Assembly (NCBI GenBank): GCA_013115145.1
Contig: JAAPAO010000128.1
Span: 1-64,000 of the forward strand
Direction: 5' to 3'
Length of the DNA: 64,000 bases
Source of the DNA: Perkinsus chesapeaki ATCC PRA-425
Taxonomy: Eukaryota > Protista > Perkinsozoa
The notes below the pieces were generated by a model. It was not told where the DNA came from. It searched no databases and was given only the letters and a program-made list of their open reading frames with translations. How positions within the stretch are numbered: position 1 is the first letter of the stretch; each line of letters starts with the position of its first letter. Below, piece by piece: positions 1,420-60,706 of the stretch. The translations under genes and the position numbers were made by a program.

Positions 1420-2445
1420 ATGGATTCTCAAGCTCCAGTGAAGCGGCAAATTCAGCCGATTGATACCGTGGCCAACAGAGTTCTCGGCATCCTTGATGAA
1501 TCGGCATCCCAATTAGGCGCGTCTGATTTTGTAGGCTTACGGAAACGAATATGGGTGAGCCGATTCACTGCAGTTACTCGTGGAGCTCCAGCTGTGCGAT
1601 GCCACTCTGAGCCTGGCTCTTGGGAAGGTTCTCGCCGAGGCGTCGTGGATGCCTCGAAACTCCACAGGTTTGCTATTACTAGATCACCTTCGAAACTCTG
1701 TTGTTTCTTTAGTTTCGTTTGTCCTATCGGCAGAGGAGAAGAATCGAGCTATCCTGGAAGAGACGGCTGAAGCTATCAAGAGCTTGCATCCGAGCTTCCT
1801 TGTCATCCCTGTTGTCACCAGCTTGAAAGACCTCTGCGTCGATGCTTTGTTTGGCGATCTTTCCCAGGGGAAGCAGTGCGCGGTTGTTTACTCGACGCAC
1901 CTGTGTGGAGCTGATGCAGATTTGGCCATGCGAAGTGAGGTTCACTCGCACTGCCAGGGCAAGTTGCCTGTCGCTTCAGGTTTGTCCCGTTCACAAGGGT
2001 GCACTGAAGAACGCTGCGCTTCCTTGGTTGCAGCCTCCTGCTGCCACTATCTTTGCGAATGGAGCCATTTTGTTGGTCGAGCTCCGTGGATGCGCCACTT
2101 TAACCTAACGCATACCGACTTTCTAGGATGCGTAAGTAACACCTTCATTTCGTGATGGTATTTCGATGACCGTTTCAATAGAGTTCTCCCGATGTCTCTT
2201 TGTAGGTTGAAGCGTCGTCTTGGGCTCGACTTGAAAACGCCACTGATGACCGTCGGCAAGCTGTTGGCCAGGCTGCTATAAAGCTCCTCGATGCGGCTAG
2301 ATTGATGGCTTTGAAAGAGGCTGATGATTACTCAATATGGAGCAAGAGGGAAGTTGTGCCGTATGGGACGGACCAAGACGTTAACATCATCGAGCTGCTC
2401 GTCGATGATGCCGTCCGCAGTGGTGGAGATCGTGACTATTCATGA
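1420..2445 (+). CDS. Hypothetical spliced protein
   Basis: ATG 1420 exon MDSQAPV...RKRIW then gtgagc donor; long exon in the 1580-2155 frame; last exon VEASSWARLENATDDRRQAVG...DRDYS* after a tag acceptor. Confidence 0.5.
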
Positions 2446-2611
2446 TGACAGTGAATCGACATATTTGAGTATAATTCGTACCAAAGCGCCTTCTACTGCA
2501 GGCCAGTCTAACGATGCAGTGGGGCACAAGTTATGCAAATTCTAAGTGTTGTGTTTTCACTCCTCCGGGTGCCGTTGTCTTTGCTCTCCCGCAGTCTTAT
2601 TTCCGGCCCTA

Positions 2612-2963
2612 ATGGTAAGGTAAAACCTATCCACCAATATCCAATCTGGTCAGCAGCGGTTACGTGTTTCATAGGTTGCCAACGCGTCTGAGCATGACCC
2701 TCTCGTTGCGGAAGTGTACGACCAAATCAAAGACATGACTGTCAAAGAGGCGATTTTGTTCGTCAAAAAGCTCCAGGTTATTCGACGAGTATCCGATATG
2801 TACAGGGCCATTCCTCGTTCAGATAGAACGTATCCGAGAAGCCCACGCGAAGCTGGTGGATGAAGTCGGCCCGGCAATCGGGGGCAAGGTTGAACGCACG
2901 AAGGCTGCTGTAATCCCTGATCGCCGTTGTTGTGCCTTTAGTTGTTCTCGCGTAGGTTGGTAA
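2612..2963 (+). CDS. Small spliced hypothetical protein; N-terminal helix weakly resembles ribosomal L7/L12 dimerisation helices
   Basis: ATG/gtaagg...tttcatag/VANASEHDPLVAEVYDQIKDMTVKEAILFVKKLQ/gttatt...ttcag/IERIREAHAKL; no L12 C-terminal domain seen. Confidence 0.3.
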
Positions 2964-4572
2964 GAAGTGATTAACTGATTATTATGAAGCTTTCGTATTG
3001 TAATTAATATGATTGCACGATAGGCAAGTTTGGGACATTACTTCCACAACTGTTGTGTTCATATTCGTAAATCCAGCAGCAAGTAACAAGCAAGGTGCAC
3101 GCGACTGAAAGAAGACGCTACTTCCGTTACACTAGATATTGCTGAGCCATTCTCTGACATCAAGGACAGGATGGACCAAAGAGTGAACATATTACAAAAA
3201 ACAGCTAATGCAATGTAATCCTCAAGAACTCACCTCATGATACTCTTAGGCCTAAACTGAGGGAACGTTCACCTTATAATATAAGGGTTATATAGTAGCT
3301 GGACTGCCAAACTGAACGACTACTCCTTGACGTTCCAAATGATATTGGTGCGAATGTCCATTTCGAATATCCAAACACACCCCAGGAAGATTTGCTTGAG
3401 ATTCTTCTCATGAGGTCACAGTACTTGAGAATTCACTTAATCCACCGCTTCATAGTACATTGGAGATGCGGTCGCGATACGGCAACCGCTAGCGGAAACC
3501 GAATAGGGGCTCTCCATAGTGTTGTGATAGCCGCGTTTACCTTACCGCTCCTCCCGGCTACCGTCTATTACCGCGATATTGGTCGAGTGGTAACCGGGAA
3601 AGCGCGGTATTCGATAGCGGTATCCCGCGAAGTGGTCATTCGATTTTACCATTTCCCGAAAACCACACCGCGTTTACCAGGTTTTCGTTTATTTCCGGAT
3701 ACGTTAGAGGGGAGGAGAACAGTAACTGCATTGAAAAGTCTACGTGGTTACTTCCAGCGCAAAACTGGCAGTAAGTGCAGTGTCCTGGTACTCCATATCG
3801 TAGAGTCTATGACCTTCCATTAGCATTTCAGGAGGTATCCCTGAGGTATCTTATAAGACCTCTTGAGAGAAAACTAGGATGGAGCCTCCATTGTGGAGGC
3901 TGTCTGAGCTTTCACCTCAACTTCGCAAGACAGCTACGGCGGCCGGTAGCAACAGTTTTGTCAAAACTAGTGTACTGTACACGAGATTCGCGGTTATGGA
4001 GAGAGGCACAGGTCAAGATTATGGTACTTGGAAAACGGGGCGCACCAGGTACGATTGATGTGCCTAGGTATATTGGAAGTCGTTCACCGAATGATGTGAC
4101 CGTCAAGCATGAAGTTGCGTCCCTCGAAATTCAAGGCTCGAACGTATTATGACTGTTCCTCAACACAACTGACAATTAGTATATCTGATAGACCGGACTT
4201 GCGACTTTCCCAAACCCTTCGTTTCAGCAATGAGATGAGAGAAGGACGGTTAACATCTATAAGGACTGCCTGTCACTATTTGATGATTGCTGAATCTGAC
4301 TCGGCTTAGCATCGACTCGTTGCCAACGAGCCGTATTTCGTCAATGCGTTTAAGATAATACAGTAGAGTTTCACGGTGAAACTGTCACCGGTTTTACATG
4401 TAAAACTGTTTTTCGCGTTGTGTAAATTGTGAAAAACGCGATGTGTTGTGTAGAGACGACACTTCGCGTAAGAACACTGGCGAAAAACGCAATAACGCGT
4501 TTTACACATCAATGATAACGCGTTATAAATGTACTGAAAAAAGCTATTGTCGTTTTTCAACGACAATTCAAG

Positions 4573-5460
4573 AAGCCTCCGGGAAATGATGGACAGGATG
4601 TCCGTGCAGTGGCAGGGACAAATGAACAGCTGGGCATGGGCAGGCGTCAGGAACAACACGACTTGATGAAGGACAGAGTATGGGTAATGACGCGTCACTG
4701 ACGAGTACTTCTAAAAACAATGCTACCTAGCTGCTTTGAGGCTTAACCTCTTCGAAACATTCGTGTGGGAACTGGCTGTGTTGAACATCGGAAGTCTGTT
4801 GCCGTTGTGAAGCACACCATTGTATTGCGGTGACGTGACGCCAGGCACCATCACTGTGGTGTTTCTGGCGTTCTCTTCAATCCTCTCTAACAGATAGATG
4901 CTTCTAGAGGGCACATCTCGGTCTGTTTCACGCGCCTCGAAACTAGTATCGCATGATGACTTATTATCGATAAGGCGTAAGTGTCGTCATGGAGAGCTGC
5001 GGCTCTCGGTTTGGGCGACTTCGGTGTGACCACGTCGGAATCTGCCATCGCTCTGGCATGCAAGAGCGAGCCAAGCATGAGCCAGTAATGCTAGGAAATG
5101 GCGGGAGCACAGCCTCGTGTTGAAATAGCTCTCAAGAGCTGGACCGGTGTCGGCACGGCGGACAGTAGACTCGGCAACAGGTTGGGAGAGAGGTGGGGAC
5201 AGAGTTAAAGAAGACCATAGTTACCCAAACGGATGGTGTCGGGCCGTGCGTCTGGCCGGGCCGCGTTGTGGCAGTTCGAAGGAAGGTGCTCTGCGCTTCA
5301 ATGCCTGATCGGCAGCAAACTCGTACATTCGAGGCAAGCGGACTTGGTGGCTAACCTTGACAGCCAACGAGAGCCCTCCTGTGGATGTGCGGCTGCTCGG
5401 TCGATAACGCTGACAAAATGAGTAACATTAAACCTTTCTCGATGGTGAGCTATAACCGCT
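4573..5460 (-). pseudogene. Decayed, internally deleted duplicate of the 12.5-15.0 kb Sfi1-like gene
   Basis: 4573-5045 aligns by eye to 12479-13015 and 5061-5460 aligns to 14611-15008; the intervening ~1.6 kb is absent. A net 14-nt frameshifting insertion at ~4953-4968 breaks DDTYALS-DTSFEARE. Confidence 0.8.
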
Positions 5461-8523: not shown

Positions 8524-10006
8524 TGTAAGTGGGTTACTGTTATTGTTTTCGCCCTATTTCATTTTATGTAGACCCTACACCCGCCACCTCGCTTTATCTC
8601 CTTCTCTTGAACCCCTCTTGAAGACCAACCCCTGCAGGCTCGGTAATTCCGACGCTATTATGTTCCGAGCATTTTGAAGTTCTTTCTGGTCCACCAGCTA
8701 GGTTGATGTCATCTCCTGCCAACGATGTACATAGATAACGGTGGCAGACATCTCAGCCTTTTTTTGACTTCGAAGAGTTGCGTTGAAGCAATGCCGTTGT
8801 TGACTAGTTCGCCGGACATTCACCCTCTCTTTCTCAACTTCAAGAGTTGGACCGCGCTGAAGGGGTTGGGATCGGTTGGGCAAGCCCCGAAAGTAGCTCA
8901 GTGTGAGTAGCATTCCTTACTTGTTTTGCAATCATGAAGAGGACTGAGCAGTGATACAACATCTTCAGCATGCGAAGTTCTTATTTGAACAAGGGAACCC
9001 ATAGACGCTGAGGTTGGGACTCCCAACCTTGGAAGTAACTGTCACAAATTCGCTAATAAATTTAGCTAAGCTCAAGTCGGATTACCGCATAGAATCGTAA
9101 GACATCGTGGTAAACTACACGTTCTGTTCACCGGTGCTCGCGGTTGTCTTCCTTTTTCTGCGGTGTTCGTGAAGTCGTAAACGGTTACCGCTAGCGGCTG
9201 CCATACCGCGAGTGCATCTCTATTATATTTATTTCCATTTTATTTGCGTCATAAAATCAAGAATCTTGATTCAAGATAAAGGGTACTACTAGCAAACGGG
9301 ATAATAACTATACCTTCACTTCAGTAGAGTGATGACGTACCCGGTAGGCGCGGTACAAGCGAACCCGTTGAGCGTAACCGGGATGTCGTTACCGCGTGAG
9401 CCACGTAGCGCAACACTCGTTTACCCTGCCACAACTACTGCGGTAAGCCTAGTTGTAAGCAAGCTCATCAGGATTCGAAACGAAGTTCAAGATTTGCAAC
9501 TCGCACCGAGAAGAGTGCCTCAAGACAAGCCGACAAGAGACAAGAGTCTAACCGTCAAGAGCGCCGTTAGACGTGGCTTCCCCTGTCACCTTGCTAGCAA
9601 CACAGGTGATTTCGTGCATTCATAAGCGAGTTCTGGCCGTGGCCCACGAGAGCGAGGAATCGTGGAACGTCGGAGAGAAAGTACGGAAACAAATGTTCAT
9701 ATATGATCGTTACACCAAAGTATCGCAATACTCTTCCGCGCGCCATCCATGACGCGGCTGCGAAGTTCACTGTAAGAATATTACTCCTGGAAGTAGCCAC
9801 TGCCGACACAAATATGGAATATCTCCATCGATAGCTTCATTCCACCCCTTAACGTTTTATCCTTGAAAACTAGATTAGCATATCACGCAGTAGTAGAATG
9901 CACACATCAGCTATTTTCTTCTCATACCTCACTGTCGATATAATTGGCGAGAGAACAAAACAGCAAGTAACCGGTTAGTTGGGATGAGTATATTGATCAT
10001 GGAAAG

Positions 10007-36271: not shown

Positions 36272-45160
<8,889 letters not shown>

Positions 45161-55000: not shown

Positions 55001-56413
55001 ATGGAACTCACGTCAGATGATATCTGGGGCTCGCCCATCCGAGGAGTGGCTTTGCGTGAAATCACCGCAAGGTTGTCTGTGTTTCGGAACTCTGAAGCAT
55101 CAGATGAATCATACCGATTGTCCAAAACGGTCGAGAAGTTAGATCTATTTTTAAGTCACTCATGGTCTGGTAGCCCTTTCTGGAAGCATATGACACTCGT
55201 TACCGTTCTGTATGTCAAGTTTGGTTATATTGCAATGCTCCTCACTGTTATACCATTATCAGTAGGTATTTACTTCTTACCCGTTTATAAAAGAGAGGCT
55301 GTTGTAGCCACGGAAGTACTCGGTGTGTTGGCCATGTTTCTCGGTATGTGGTTTGGTTATCTAGTCCCAAGCCGAACCAACAAGAAAATGGTGTTCCTTG
55401 ATAAATGCTGTATACCTCAAGTTGACGAGAAGGCGAAGAGGGAAGGGTTGAAGAACATGGAAGCCTACCTTAGTCGATCTGATACGCTGCTTATCCTTTG
55501 GACGCCCGAGTACTTCTCGAGGCTTTGGTGTGTCTTTGAGTTGGCTAGCTATCTTCGTAGTCATGGAGCCGACTCGATTCTGTGCTTGTCGGCTTGGTTT
55601 ATGCGGTTTTCTTACGTTGTCGTCTGGTGGGAGGTGTTCAGTCTTCTTGCTGCTGAAATCGCGAACGCCGCAATCCCAATCAAACAAGCACAGACGCTTT
55701 GGGGCGAATTCGTTGTGTGTTTAGTCGCTGAGGTCGCTATATCCATCGCTATATGTTTAATTGTGATCCTCTTCTGTATTCCTGCCAAGATGGAGTTGAA
55801 GAAGCAGGTTCAACAGTTTTCAATGCGGACAGCATACTGCACGCTCGCTGAAGATACTACTATGCTGAGCTCTCGAATTTCCGAGTGGTATGGCTCGAAT
55901 GAAAACTTTGATGAGTGTGTACGAAGTAGCTGGTCACGGGTAAACTCAGTAATGAAGATTCCAGAGCCTGCCTTATCGAGACCGGGAATTGCCTTCGTTA
56001 CCTTCCCTTATGTAATGGCCTTGTGGCCTCGTTTGCTTACTGCTTTGGCCTGGAATTATGGAAGCGAGGAAAATGGGTATTCATGGACTGTAATTATTCG
56101 GAGTACATTCATCATGTTTGTTCTACTAGCATGCCGCACACCTCTCTTCGTTGTGATGTCCTACCGCATAGGTAGCGCCGTATGGCTGAAGGGCAGTCTC
56201 GCTAAATGCATCAGTATCGCTATTATGGTGTTTTTTGCTCTTCTTTACGGTGGCGCTATGTTCGTTTCAGCGCAGGGAGTCTTAATCTTTTACGGACCCC
56301 AGACGCCAGTTCTATTCCCGCAAAGTCCCTGGGCGTGGCTATTCATCACACTACCGATATTGGCCGTTGCATTGGTGTGCTGGACCCACTTTCCCCGCAG
56401 CTTGCATCATTGA
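55001..56413 (+). CDS. Intronless polytopic membrane protein with TM-interrupted TIR-like domain (copy 1)
   Basis: 470-aa ORF; LFLSHSW, two TM helices, VFLDKCCIPQ, SDTLLILWTPEYFSRLWCVFELAS, further TM helices. Confidence 0.8.
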   Translation: MELTSDDIWGSPIRGVALREITARLSVFRNSEASDESYRLSKTVEKLDLFLSHSWSGSPFWKHMTLVTVLYVKFGYIAMLLTVIPLSVGIYFLPVYKREAVVATEVLGVLAMFLGMWFGYLVPSRTNKKMVFLDKCCIPQVDEKAKREGLKNMEAYLSRSDTLLILWTPEYFSRLWCVFELASYLRSHGADSILCLSAWFMRFSYVVVWWEVFSLLAAEIANAAIPIKQAQTLWGEFVVCLVAEVAISIAICLIVILFCIPAKMELKKQVQQFSMRTAYCTLAEDTTMLSSRISEWYGSNENFDECVRSSWSRVNSVMKIPEPALSRPGIAFVTFPYVMALWPRLLTALAWNYGSEENGYSWTVIIRSTFIMFVLLACRTPLFVVMSYRIGSAVWLKGSLAKCISIAIMVFFALLYGGAMFVSAQGVLIFYGPQTPVLFPQSPWAWLFITLPILAVALVCWTHFPRSLHH

Positions 56414-56924
56414 TAAGTCATTATTTCATCCTTATTTGTCGAGGTTTAAAATTATAGGCAGGTCTTTTGTAAGATACGTGTATTGAGTTTAGTTTTCTCC
56501 GTTTTTGGGCATTGGTAAAGTGACATTAGTTATTTGAAATATATAATATATTTCGAAATCGGTGTTCCTTGTTGGCAAGAAGCTTTTGATTGTATGGCAA
56601 GTAAGGCCTTGAAATTTCTGTTGGCATCTAAATAAGTCAGAATGTGACCAGTATGATATCGAAGGAGTAAGAACAGACCTTTCCTGAGGGTGAGGTGCTA
56701 GCCCTCCGAACCATGAGACGAGAATGGTGGGAGTTTAAGTCCAAGAACCGGGATCGAGATCTGAAGTTTTAGCTGTTCTGTATTGCAACTTAATGGTTGA
56801 ACCACCTTCTTCAGATCAAATACTGTGCAGGTGATTAAGTTCTTCTCGTTCTGATCACTCTTTTGGTTCCAGAGTGTCAAAACCTCATACTTGTTACCTC
56901 TGCGGTCATGCGTCCACCACCTGT

Positions 56925-57253
56925 CGCCCAGCAGGCTGCTGGGCGTTTGCCGACGCAGCTGCTGGCAGCAGCTGTGTCGGCAAACGTCATAAGAGTCTCT
57001 TATTGAGAGATGACATCAAGCACATCTCTGAGATGTGATAAGTATTTCCGAAATACTATGTCGCCTGAATCCTCCGAACTTCGGAGTCTTCGGAGTCCGA
57101 AGACTGGGGAGTTCCCAGTGGGGACTGTGACACAGTCGCTGTGTCCGACATTCAATATCGGGCTTCACAAGGGTACAGTAGCTCGCATGGAGAAGTACAT
57201 ACCGAGAGGCTTCGTGCCTTTTTCCTGGAAGAACCCTCCCGGAGGGTCCCTCC
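56925..57253. repeat. Dense array of sequence-unrelated palindromes with 1-nt centres
   Basis: Arm lengths: 10 (56925), 21 with one mismatch (56944), 7 (56989), 8 (57021), 8 (57041), 7 (57072), 9 (57086), 7 (57123), 7 (57233), 6 (57241). Confidence 0.95.
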
Positions 57254-57299
57254 CCGTCTAATACGGGGGGGGCGGAGGAGGTCAGCCTAAAACGGCTTT

Positions 57300-58600
57300 G
57301 GATCCCGTCACCTTGCCATCAGCCAGCGAGATTGGCAAGGAGTTTAGCACGCTCAATTTTCTAAACCAGCACGATACAGCCAGATACTTGAGCGACTTGC
57401 TGAGGATCAGGGAGTGCTAGACTTGCTCAAGCTCACCCAGGACGCCGCCTGTGCAGCTAAGCCTCCTGCTGCGGTTCCTATGCCCCGCGTGAAGTCCTAT
57501 GTATCCACCTTGGACCTTCCCCAGCGTAAGCTCGAGAAGCTTGCTGGTAGTATCGATAGAGACTCATGGAGCTCTGTGCTCCCGCAGAGGTCACCCATAC
57601 GGTCCTCCTTGTCGGACTGTGAGCTGAACTTTGTCCTACGGAACCCAAGGATATGTTCAGCTCTGTTTGCAAGCACTTCGAACTTCAATCTACCTCCAGC
57701 AGCTCCAGCAGCACCAATAGCACAGAAGGGTCACAGAGACTCGTGTTCGGGATGGACTTCGGTGGTGGCACTAATAAGGTAGCCGTACGTCCTGTGGGAC
57801 TATCCGATGGACATGGCTGTTTGGTTGTGCTGGACAGCAGGAAGGACTCGAGGCTCACCACAAAACAGATCGTTCATGAGTTGAAACGGCTCGAGCAGTG
57901 GTTCCACTTGTTTCAATTCTGATAACGAACAACAGTTTTCGGCCGGGACATCATCTAACGCCTGATGGTTATGCGCCGCATGATATTTCTTCCCGACGAC
58001 ACCGCATAATATGCTAAGGTCTGGACCAGACCATCTGGGGCATGCAGGAATCAACTGGAAGATCTTCGGTCAGATAAGCTGCATCTATCTCCGGGAGATG
58101 ATCTCCCACCAACCCTATTGCAGGAAGCACTCCCACCAAGACTGACGTCTTGTGCTACTCCGGGTCCCGGAGTCCGGGAATGACTGCAAAAGGATCCTAG
58201 AGTCTAGGACCTAGACAAATCGGATACTACTGCGCCCGCTCTCGAAGGCTTGGAGAAGTGGAAAGATTCATGTAAGGTCCCGGTAGCTACGTGTTTGCTC
58301 ATGAAAGGGCTGATGGCTGCGCATTCTGCGGAGTCCCGTTAATGATTTCAACAATGCGTACGTTTCTGCAGGATACAATTCGAGTCTGATTATTCATTAA
58401 ATGAATTTCATTTGCTGTTGGTCCATACAGTCGAGCTCTATATGGCAGCAGTGATGGCTTGCGACTAGTGACTGAGGAGTTGTCAGAGCAAGTACACTCG
58501 GCGGTGAACACAGTCATTAGACGATCACAGATGGGATCCAATTTGCTCGGTCCAATGGCCATGTGGAACTGGCAGTATTCGCCTGATGAAGCCTCGGAAT
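57300..58600 (+). mobile_element. Decayed DDE transposase-like relic (Transib/RAG1/Chapaev-like motifs)
   Basis: Frameshifted fragments in the expected order: RLVFGMDFGGGTNKVAV, IFLPDD, FHLLLVHTVELY, GLRLVTEELSEQVHSAV. Stops and frameshifts between them; no terminal inverted repeats identified. Confidence 0.4.
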
Positions 58601-58743
58601 CCGTCGATTACCTTATCCCCGGGAGCCCTAGTTACAGGCCGGAGCGGAACCGGAAAGGGGATAGCATTATCTTCCCAAGTTAATCTCAGTTCTACCTCTC
58701 AGCCTTCCACTCGGTTTCAGTCAGGTGGTTCGGAGTATGTTGA

Positions 58744-58874
58744 TGGAAGGGAGTCCAACAGTAAATAATTCTTTCGAGTCGAAAGAATTATTTACTGTTG
58801 GACTCCCTTCCAATCACAATCACACACAATCACAGTAAGTTAGTCGAAAGTTTCGACTAACTTACTGTGATTGT
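58744..58874. repeat. Two long perfect palindromes
   Basis: 34-bp arms with central G (58744-58812) and 24-bp arms with central G (58826-58874); both cores contain TCGAAA/TTTCGA. Confidence 0.97.
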
Positions 58875-59215
58875 TGCACCGATAAAGATTCGTTCCGAAC
58901 GCGAATATTCTGAGGAAAATAGCTAAAACAAGATTAACAGCTAAAATTTTAGATTAGTAGTGTGGACCACTGATTGCTCACGACTCCCGCGTAGGCAAAC
59001 CCTGGCAGTTGTTAAGGATGCGACACACATTCTGTCACACTGCGTGAACAGTCACAGCGTGACTGTGCCCCACCGACAGAAGTTCTGTCGCTGCGAAATG
59101 CTCGAAGCCCCTGGGATTTAAGTGGTAGCCTTCATCATTGCGAGGTACATGTCTTTTTGTTGTGGGCTTTCGCTGCTCTATTCTTCAGTCCTCTTGGCAG
59201 TATATTCCTTTTTAT

Positions 59216-60706
59216 ATGGCTGATCCTAATATCGGCGTTGAAGGACCCCCAGAGTTACGAATGCGGAGCTCGAGCGACGTGTCGGACCTCGCCCAGCTGC
59301 TACGAGGAATACCTGCTAGTGTTATCGCAGCTAACTGGTCTCTTTTCCGTGATCCTGGAGCTGATCGCTCTACATATGATCTGTCCCGACCTGTTAATAT
59401 CTTGGACGTTTTTATTAGCCACTCATGGTCAGGCAGTCCACTGTGGAAGCAGATATCATTTCTAACTACCCTTTACCTCCGGGAGGGCTATATTGCTATG
59501 TTTATCGTTGTTATTCCTTTATCTATTGGAGTCTATGTATTACCATCTCACCAGGAGCTCGCGTCTGTCCTGGTTGAACTTGTTGGTGTCATTGCTATGT
59601 GTCTTGGTGTGGTGTATGGGTATCGGTTGGTCAAGAAGAAGTCGGAAGATATGGTTTTCCTGGATAAATGTTGTATACCACAAGATGATCCTGCCGCCAA
59701 GGAGCGGGGTATATGCAGTATAAGCGTTTTTCTACACCATTCGAGCAGGCTTATGATACTGTGGAGCCCAGACTACTTCTCACGGCTCTGGTGCGTATTC
59801 GAATTGGCATCCTTTCTTCGAGCACATAGCCCCGATGCTATTGTACTAGTATCCACATTGCAAAGCCGTTTTTGTATATCCGTCACTATCTGCGAAATTG
59901 CTGTGCTCGTGACGGTCATCCTAAGCGATCTGTTGTTCAAAATCCATCCATTAGCATTCTATGCACCACTCGTGGTCCTCATTGTACTAGAAGTCATAGT
60001 GACTTTTGTCATATGCGTTGAGGTTATTTCTGGATTCGTGCCGGCGAAGTCTAAGATCAACGAACAAGTGGAATCCTTTCGAGTGAGTGAGGCCCAGTGC
60101 TCCCTCCCCGAGGATAATCGTGTCCTTCGTGAAACCATCGCTCAATGGTATGGATCTGAATCACAGTTTGAGGACAGTTTACGTGACAACTGGCCTCGCT
60201 TGGGTGCAACTCAAATTCCGGAATGGGCCCTGAGTCGGCGCAGCGTAGGGATCGTCATGTTCCCGTATATGATTATTTGGGCTCCGCGTATTGCGTGTCT
60301 CATATCTACGCCGACTCTGATGCCCAGAGAGCAGTGGTGGTTGTACGTTAGAGATGTCCTTATTGCGTGTGTCATGCTTGCTTGTCGAACACCGTTATTC
60401 GCTTTTGTTGCATGCAAACTAACAACCTCAGCCGGACGACATGGAGTACCAAACTGGATCGTCATTGTCGTGGTGCTTGTATTTGGGGTTTTGTATGATG
60501 CTACTGAGATTGTTGGAGGAGGGGTAGCCCTGTTCGACTCGAGCCTCGCAACTCGGTTCAAGCTCCCTGAACCCTATGGCTGGGTGTTCGTCATTCCTGC
60601 TTGTGGTTGCCTACTTGCTATTTGGTGGACTTATCGTGGTCTCACATTTTGTTCAAGGCGCCGATCGACACCTCAAAAGATCGTCAGTACAGAAAACTCA
60701 CTTTAA
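59216..60706 (+). CDS. Intronless split-TIR polytopic membrane protein (copy 2)
   Basis: ORF 59138-60706, likely ATG 59216; VFISHSW, VFLDKCCIPQ, SRLMILWSPDYFSRLWCVFELAS, FRVSEAQCS...WYGSE..FE; paralog of copy 1. Confidence 0.8.
   Translation: MADPNIGVEGPPELRMRSSSDVSDLAQLLRGIPASVIAANWSLFRDPGADRSTYDLSRPVNILDVFISHSWSGSPLWKQISFLTTLYLREGYIAMFIVVIPLSIGVYVLPSHQELASVLVELVGVIAMCLGVVYGYRLVKKKSEDMVFLDKCCIPQDDPAAKERGICSISVFLHHSSRLMILWSPDYFSRLWCVFELASFLRAHSPDAIVLVSTLQSRFCISVTICEIAVLVTVILSDLLFKIHPLAFYAPLVVLIVLEVIVTFVICVEVISGFVPAKSKINEQVESFRVSEAQCSLPEDNRVLRETIAQWYGSESQFEDSLRDNWPRLGATQIPEWALSRRSVGIVMFPYMIIWAPRIACLISTPTLMPREQWWLYVRDVLIACVMLACRTPLFAFVACKLTTSAGRHGVPNWIVIVVVLVFGVLYDATEIVGGGVALFDSSLATRFKLPEPYGWVFVIPACGCLLAIWWTYRGLTFCSRRRSTPQKIVSTENSL

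Follow-up and report, generated by a model that had tools for sequence, protein, structure and literature searches.

The DNA considered here is a 64,000-nt window of contig JAAPAO010000128.1 from the assembly GCA_013115145.1 of the clam parasite Perkinsus chesapeaki. Towards its end lie two paralogous, intronless genes for membrane proteins, at 55001-56413 and 59138-60706, both on the plus strand, and the intergenic DNA between them carries a dense field of palindromes that have a single base at their centre. As argued below, these palindromes are very probably the excision footprints of cut-and-paste transposons of the hAT superfamily, piled up at an insertion hotspot. The gene pair itself is tandemly duplicated on the contig, the second copy occupying contig positions 63870-66406 (18870-21406 of locus L001). 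The first genes and 345 bp of their 3' flank (55130-56758 against 63870-65491) are 87.7% identical, and the starts of the second genes (59138-59722 against 65822-66406) are 96.9% identical, an inequality that suggests gene conversion of the second gene. The intergenic DNA measures 2.38 kb here and 0.33 kb in the other copy; the field thus lies in DNA that is specific to this copy.

An exhaustive count of 56900-58900 was made for perfect palindromes that have a single central base between arms of 7 bp or more. The real sequence holds 19 of them, whereas 100 dinucleotide-preserving shuffles hold 0.19 on average and never more than 2. The same exhaustive count found no palindromes with centres of 0, 2 or 4 bases, and those with centres of 3, 5 and 7 bases (9, 5 and 4, respectively) are inner portions of the same palindromes, which were also recovered by an independent repeat finder. 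The original prediction for this stretch had listed 16 palindromes, claimed a large excess over chance, and described each as an inverted copy of its own flank with no sequence common to all. Direct reading and the exhaustive count place all 16 within one base of where they had been put; one coordinate needs amendment (57086 should read 57085-57105), the one palindrome with a single mismatch is that at 56944-56986 with its 21-bp arms, and four had been overlooked (56956-56974, 58165-58179, 58392-58406 and 58399-58413). The excess is borne out by the shuffles, the one-base centre, on whose surplus over other centres that reading had been staked, is strongly in excess, and the description as inverted copies of the flank is correct. 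So is the denial of a repeat family, a candidate that we discard as well: blastn of the intergenic DNA against the window and the other Perkinsus loci introduced below matched only the palindromes themselves. Rfam and tRNA scans gave no RNA genes.

The field falls into two clusters, 56925-57254 and 58018-58413, and a pair of adjoining palindromes, or twin, at 58744-58874. It is the local peak of a feature that runs through the whole window. Outside the field, the window contains 42 one-base-centre palindromes where 3.55 are expected, and 8-11 even-centre palindromes where about 4 are expected. Counted as the events described below, the two 2-kb intervals at 56-60 kb hold 8 and 5, compared with 0-3 per 2 kb elsewhere on the contig.

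The palindromes are combined by a strict rule. They often overlap pairwise at an offset of 7 bases, and this arrangement was formalised as a scar: an 8-bp unit T without its last base, followed by the reverse complement of T, followed by T without its first base, which amounts to 22 bp and lengthens the DNA by 14 bp. The window contains 14 perfect scars of this form for a T of 8 bp and none for a T of 5-7 or 9-12 bp, nor is there any scar of even geometry. Allowing up to one substitution doubles the number at 8 bp to 28 (the 14 perfect ones and 14 with one substitution) and leaves it at 0 for units of 7, 9 and 10 bp. Where a scar departs from the rule by one substitution, the departures are spread over different positions and copies; there are 13 transitions and 8 transversions, consistent with later decay by ordinary point mutation. 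The fixed unit sorts out several known kinds of footprint. The Transib and RAG type, with a 5-bp duplication and a symmetric hairpin, is rejected, there being no scar at 5 bp and none of even geometry. The footprint of Mutator-like elements (MULEs), with a duplication of 8-10 bp, typically 9-10 bp, and mostly precise excision, is rejected on the absence of scars on 9 or 10 bp. The snap-back insertions of polymerase theta, variable in length and register and devoid of a target duplication, do not match the fixed 8-bp unit and its 22-bp form.

Longer palindromes standing side by side were examined with a twin test, in which the presumed original site is reconstructed from both sides. On the left it is given by the last 7 bases of the left arm together with the complement of the centre of that palindrome, on the right by the complement of the second centre together with the first 7 bases of the right arm, and the two must be equal. 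The test is passed by 17 pairs of palindromes, each with an identical 8-bp site and both centres complemented; the three other combinations of centre polarity yield 0, 1 and 0 pairs. In scars and twins alike, the central base is in every case complementary to the one that stood next to the lost element. Of the 61 palindromes in the window, 55 fit the model: 45 belong to 22-bp scars, 6 to long twins, and 4 are singles, each with a partner copy nearby. The 6 that are not explained are about as many as chance would supply. The 42 reconstructed sites show a preference of their own: 21 have T as their second base and 19 have A as their seventh, on a background of about 26%.

About 15 events could be mapped in the region, and the first seven, E1-E7, adjoin or overlap their neighbours within 220 bp. 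E1 (56925-56986) is a twin whose left palindrome has 10-bp arms around a G at 56935, and whose right palindrome has 21-bp arms, with one mismatch, around a G at 56965; the two are joined through a shared CG, both rebuild the site CCAGCAGC, and about 37 bp were added. E2 (56989-57010) is a 22-bp scar with one substitution at the site ATAAGAGA. E3 (57006-57037) consists of a short left palindrome with an arm of 4, GATG-A-CATC, and a right one whose 8-bp arms surround a T at 57029, with the 3-nt filler AAG between them; the site of the event, AGAGATGT, overlaps that of E2 by 5 bp, and the partner copy lies 23 nt upstream of the right single. E4 (57042-57063; site GTATTTCG) is again a 22-bp scar with one substitution. 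E5 (57072-57105) is a twin with arms of 7 and 10 bp, centres at 57079 and 57095 and an overlap of AG, and both of its palindromes give CTCCGAAG. It is followed by two more 22-bp scars with one substitution each, E6 (57104-57125; site CTGGGGAC), which overlaps E5 by 2 bp, and E7 (57123-57144; site GACTGTGT), which overlaps E6 by 3 bp. By reconstruction, the events E1-E7 extended about 81 bp of ancestral DNA to the present 220 bp.

The first cluster is closed by E8 (57233-57254), a 22-bp scar with one substitution at ACCCTCCG; added DNA makes up about 46% of this 330-bp cluster. A possible decayed palindrome follows E8 at about 57253-57271; it bears the label E9 but does not enter the tally of events. 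Beyond the scar-free middle segment, 740 bp at 57276-58017, the second cluster consists entirely of 22-bp scars: E10 (58018-58039; site GGTCTGGT) with two substitutions, E11 (58086-58107; site CATCTCCC) with one, and the perfect scars E12 (58158-58179; site CTCCGGGA), E13 (58195-58216; site TCCTAGAC) and E14 (58392-58413; site ATTCATTT). E15 (58744-58874) is a twin of perfect palindromes, with arms of 34 bp around a G at 58778 and of 24 bp around a G at 58850. The two are separated by a 13-nt filler, ATCACAATCACAC, at 58813-58825, both rebuild CTTTCGAC, and about 79 bp were added. In this filler the ATCACA motif of the arm beside it (ACAATCACAG...) recurs, which looks like templated synthesis during end joining. 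E16 (59074-59090) is a single palindrome with 8-bp arms and a G at its centre, for which no partner copy was found; its counterpart in the paralogous gene copy, at about 65760-65780, has the right-arm sequence only. In all, the events added about 300 bp. Another twin stands away from the field at 37916-37966, with arms of 13 and 7 bp; the sites it rebuilds, AGCTAGAA and AGCTAGAT, differ at one base, and it is probably an older long-arm event.

Support from sequencing reads comes in the form of short-read contigs, independently assembled from four runs that cover two samples and two studies. These contigs match 56400-57550, 57522-58773 and 58783-59197 with zero differences and at single-copy depth. 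They are interrupted once, at the centre of the E15 palindrome with 34-bp arms, as is to be expected with 31-letter words. Two outcomes that the original prediction had named as fatal to itself, reads without the palindromes and a block that is a fixed part of a multicopy transposon, did not materialise: the read-derived contigs carry the palindromes, and both clusters stand at single-copy depth. An artefact of assembly, amplification or sequencing, for which it can be said that the runs holding the sequence may be the assembly's own source and were kept as contigs, not as raw reads, is hardly to be entertained. Independent contigs from four runs of two studies agree with zero differences, the same scars occur in an older P. 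marinus assembly that came from a separate project, and an artefact would not obey the 8-bp rule, the target motif or the pattern of point-mutation decay. As a separate observation from the same material, a contig present in all four runs joins 59722 to 60354 with one C between them, skipping 631 bp inside the second membrane-protein gene; it is either a shorter allele or a paralogue of that gene.

The contigs also provide a glimpse of the locus without one of its events. For E1, the model predicts an empty site CGCCCAGCAGCTG(C/T)GTCGGCAAACG with a single copy of CCAGCAGC. A contig of run X2 departs from the reference at 56934, continues with CTGCCTCGGCAAACGTCAT and reads CGCCCAGCAGCTGCCTCGGCAAACG, and thus carries the predicted empty site, 1-2 bases off the prediction. 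Where the arms of the right palindrome of E1 disagree, this contig has a C, as in the inverted copy, and the T in the reference flank therefore arose after E1. The contig is direct, though slender, support for reading the 37 palindromic bases of E1 as inserted and the event as polymorphic to this day. Scar and empty site are the two states observed for E1, and no occupied site was seen. Compared between species with empty sites in view, the orthologous loci of P. marinus (L003) and P. chesapeaki (L006) align only in their coding parts.

Three features of the field have been described for hAT transposons. Target duplications of this superfamily are predominantly 8 bp, and its hairpin is formed on the flanking DNA (PMC5499845); Hermes and other hAT elements prefer the target 5'-nTnnnnAn-3' together with the 8-bp duplication (PMC10368747, PMC2803484); and Ac/Ds elements leave palindromic footprints in which the centre is the complement of the base adjoining the element, a pattern attributed to the opening and joining of a flank hairpin (PMC5873905). 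The Perkinsus scars rebuild an 8-bp duplication, have the complemented centre and favour nTnnnnAn. The duplication of 8 bp and no other length, the complemented centre and the target preference together narrow the responsible transposase to the hAT type. The proposal that the palindromes are repeated excision scars of a hairpin-forming transposase at a hotspot thus stands in a more specific form, shorn of the transposase relic with which it had been coupled.

The scars could be formed in the following way. An inserting element would duplicate 8 bp, here written x-D-y with D denoting the inner 6 bp (below, a prime stands for the complement and rc for the reverse complement). At excision, the transposase would nick one base into each flank and seal the flank as a hairpin, whose tip would hold one unpaired base, complementary to the duplicated base next to the element; the left hairpin would then read xD-y'-rcD-x' and the right one y'-rcD-x-Dy. 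A host nuclease would open the hairpins on the 3' side, 4-34 nt from the tip, and the resulting 3' tails would be inverted copies of the flank, y'rcDx' and xDy. These tails would be complementary over all 8 nt and would usually anneal there, so that annealing, flap removal or trimming, and fill-in would produce the 22-bp scar xD + y'rcDx' + Dy with its 14 additional bp. Joining elsewhere, by 2-nt microhomology or with filler, would leave two long palindromes side by side, and it is the long twins that point to opening anywhere between 4 and 34 nt from the tip and to joining by 2-nt microhomology or templated filler as well. The alternative of an opening on the 5' side and subsequent fill-in was considered and set aside: it would give uncomplemented centres, and these are not seen. 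That the first nick lies one base into the flank was reportedly found by Zhou et al. 2004. Indirect support for this position comes from PMC5873905.

How general this route is must be put more cautiously. It is possible, if on balance doubtful, that Perkinsus treats transposase-made hairpins in an unusual way, with a cut 8-34 nt from the tip on the 3' side that is regularly followed by annealing of the two inverted copies of the target duplication, so that nearly every hAT jump adds exactly 14 bp. If this were true, the genome would be a countable and datable fossil record of excisions, and the intergenic DNA at hotspots would in part be built by them. Chains of touching scars may record one element that re-inserted within a few bp of the site it had just left. 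The hotspot could owe its existence to a preferred open target region, or to such very short-range re-insertion of one element.

There are points that weigh against assigning the scars to hAT elements. No hAT transposase, terminal inverted repeats or occupied site was found in the window and about 105 kb of other Perkinsus DNA. For the empty site of E1 there is one short contig of one sample, likely a diverged allele, with a paralogue as the alternative. Finally, other superfamilies that make 8-bp duplications, for example Merlin, Zisupton and Novosib, remain as less likely candidates. We infer the transposon from its scars alone. The claim that the field overlies the relic of a DDE transposase remains unsupported, with no match to Pfam, a protein atlas or a homologue. 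Pfam, run on 14 six-frame pieces of 67-144 amino acids from 56701-58765, gave no family at or near its curated cut-off; the 144-amino-acid piece of the region had no relatives in a homology search besides its own annotated gene model; and the atlas returned no match for the region's pieces. Among 31 open-reading-frame pieces of at least 110 amino acids from 1-36 kb of the window, Pfam found no transposase, only TRM13 and a peptidase. The C-terminal block of hAT transposases, in a provisional motif that can serve as a lead only, had no match in the window or in the other DNA fetched. Elements with inverted termini and 8-bp direct repeats were not found in the window either. The interval 16150-18451 was considered as an occupied element and dropped, its match being weak and at chance level (3 mismatches in 14), and the other candidates were AT-rich noise.

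This absence of a hAT element from the DNA examined leaves some room for another cut-and-paste superfamily with 8-bp duplications, such as Mutator-like, Merlin, P, Zisupton, Novosib or an undescribed one, that forms hairpins offset by one base. MULEs do form hairpins on the flanking DNA and make duplications of 8-10 bp (PMC5499845), and open reading frames and remnants related to Merlin, with its 8-9-bp duplications, are present in P. marinus (PMC8101967). We nevertheless consider such a source quite unlikely. More than 90% of the excisions of the MULE Muta1 are precise and free of a footprint (PMC5499845), and the Perkinsus scars include none on 9 or 10 bp; P-element footprints keep transposon-end sequence, whereas the Perkinsus scars have no common sequence; and the nTnnnnAn preference combined with a complemented centre is the published signature of hAT elements.

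One may also ask whether a transposon is needed at all. Inverted copies of the flank could in principle be written at random breaks by fold-back or template switching of the polymerase-theta type, in the course of break repair or replication, or by a nuclease that cuts with an 8-bp stagger. The templated look of the E15 filler, where the ATCACA repeats copy the adjacent arm, and the microhomology used in joining, CG in E1 and AG in E5, speak for such a process, and they imply that alternative end joining takes part in the repair step. As an explanation of the field as a whole it is very improbable: free snap-back offers no reason for a constant 8-bp unit, for an exact complement of the two outer bases or for a rebuilt direct duplication, and the sites carry a target motif like that of a transposase.

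Six further loci from the genus were searched for scars with up to one substitution. In P. chesapeaki, contig JAAPAO010000816.1 (L004, 12 kb) has 5 scars, and L006 (21.6 kb) and L007 (15 kb) have 1 each. The P. marinus locus on GG679899.1 (L003, 21.6 kb) has 5, at 9446, 11841, 12110, 15454 and 16260. In P. olseni, the paralogous locus L002 (21.4 kb) has 0, and L005 (11.6 kb) has 1, at 5386. The scar process is genus-wide, and its density is very uneven among loci and species. The five scars of L004 fall within 2.3 kb (2028-4365) between another pair of the same membrane-protein genes. Hotspots may recur in the spacers of this gene family.

The middle segment of the field, 57276-58017, is different in nature. 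It contains no scars, degenerate ones included, and has no protein-family match; that it was built from older, decayed scars was considered and rejected, there being no excess of degenerate scars in it. At 57385-57975 the depth of the read contigs is 2-3.5 times the single-copy level, with loose contig ends, and at 57466-57565 contigs share about 100 bp at about 94% identity (about 6% diverged) before running into unrelated or diverged sequence. This is a low-copy dispersed fragment; such short stretches recur at about three other places in the genome. The region is also annotated with a gene model, FOL47_001223 (56908-57922), for a hypothetical protein of 168 amino acids, whose exon 1 (56908-56991) is translated across E1 and reads ...AQQAAG...QLLAAA... 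No homologue of the protein was found, and the model is probably spurious, or scar DNA read as coding.

Normally, the footprint of an excision is so small and so variable that it escapes recognition in a genome, which leaves insertions alone to be counted. Each Perkinsus scar, by contrast, identifies both itself and its original 8-bp target, and past excisions can be tallied directly and examined for target preference, clustering and relative age. That the outcome is so uniform gives an indication of how hairpins are opened and breaks joined in Perkinsus, by annealing rather than by blunt joining, a matter that bears on genome editing and transfection in this shellfish parasite. The build-up of scars measurably lengthens intergenic DNA, and scar DNA misleads gene prediction, as exon 1 of FOL47_001223 over E1 exemplifies.

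It remains to place the Perkinsus scars among the systems they resemble; our literature search brought up no paper that deals with palindromes or footprints in this genus. There is a close likeness to the footprints of Ac/Ds in plants, Saccharomyces and Candida, which share the palindromic insertions of flank sequence, the complemented centre, the 8-bp duplication and the frequent use of microhomology (PMC5873905). Ac/Ds arms reach 20 nt in yeast (PMC5873905), compared with 34 nt in Perkinsus. Ac/Ds footprints are heterogeneous, mostly with 0-3 nt per side, while in Perkinsus a whole inverted copy of the 8 bp is present and the 22-bp scar dominates; and they are known from reversion assays, while the Perkinsus scars are a natural and dense genomic record. 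Hermes and hobo have in common with Perkinsus the 8-bp duplication with its nTnnnnAn preference and the hairpin on the donor flank, although the motif is weaker in Perkinsus, at about 48% for each of the two positions, and the system is known here from scars alone. The P nucleotides of V(D)J recombination, made by RAG and Artemis, offer a parallel in a transposase-made flank hairpin whose opening, off-centre and on the 3' side, leaves a short inverted repeat; RAG hairpins, however, are symmetric (even), the repeats measure 1-4 nt, and there is no target duplication. Polymerase-theta snap-back likewise places inverted and direct copies of nearby sequence at repaired breaks, and the filler of E15 and the microhomology joins suggest that a related end-joining activity completes the scars; its insertions vary in length and register, however, and do not rebuild an 8-bp duplication with complemented ends. 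The chemistry of excision is known from other hAT footprints, and what differs in Perkinsus from the published cases is the uniform outcome, the very long arms and the high density in a natural genome.

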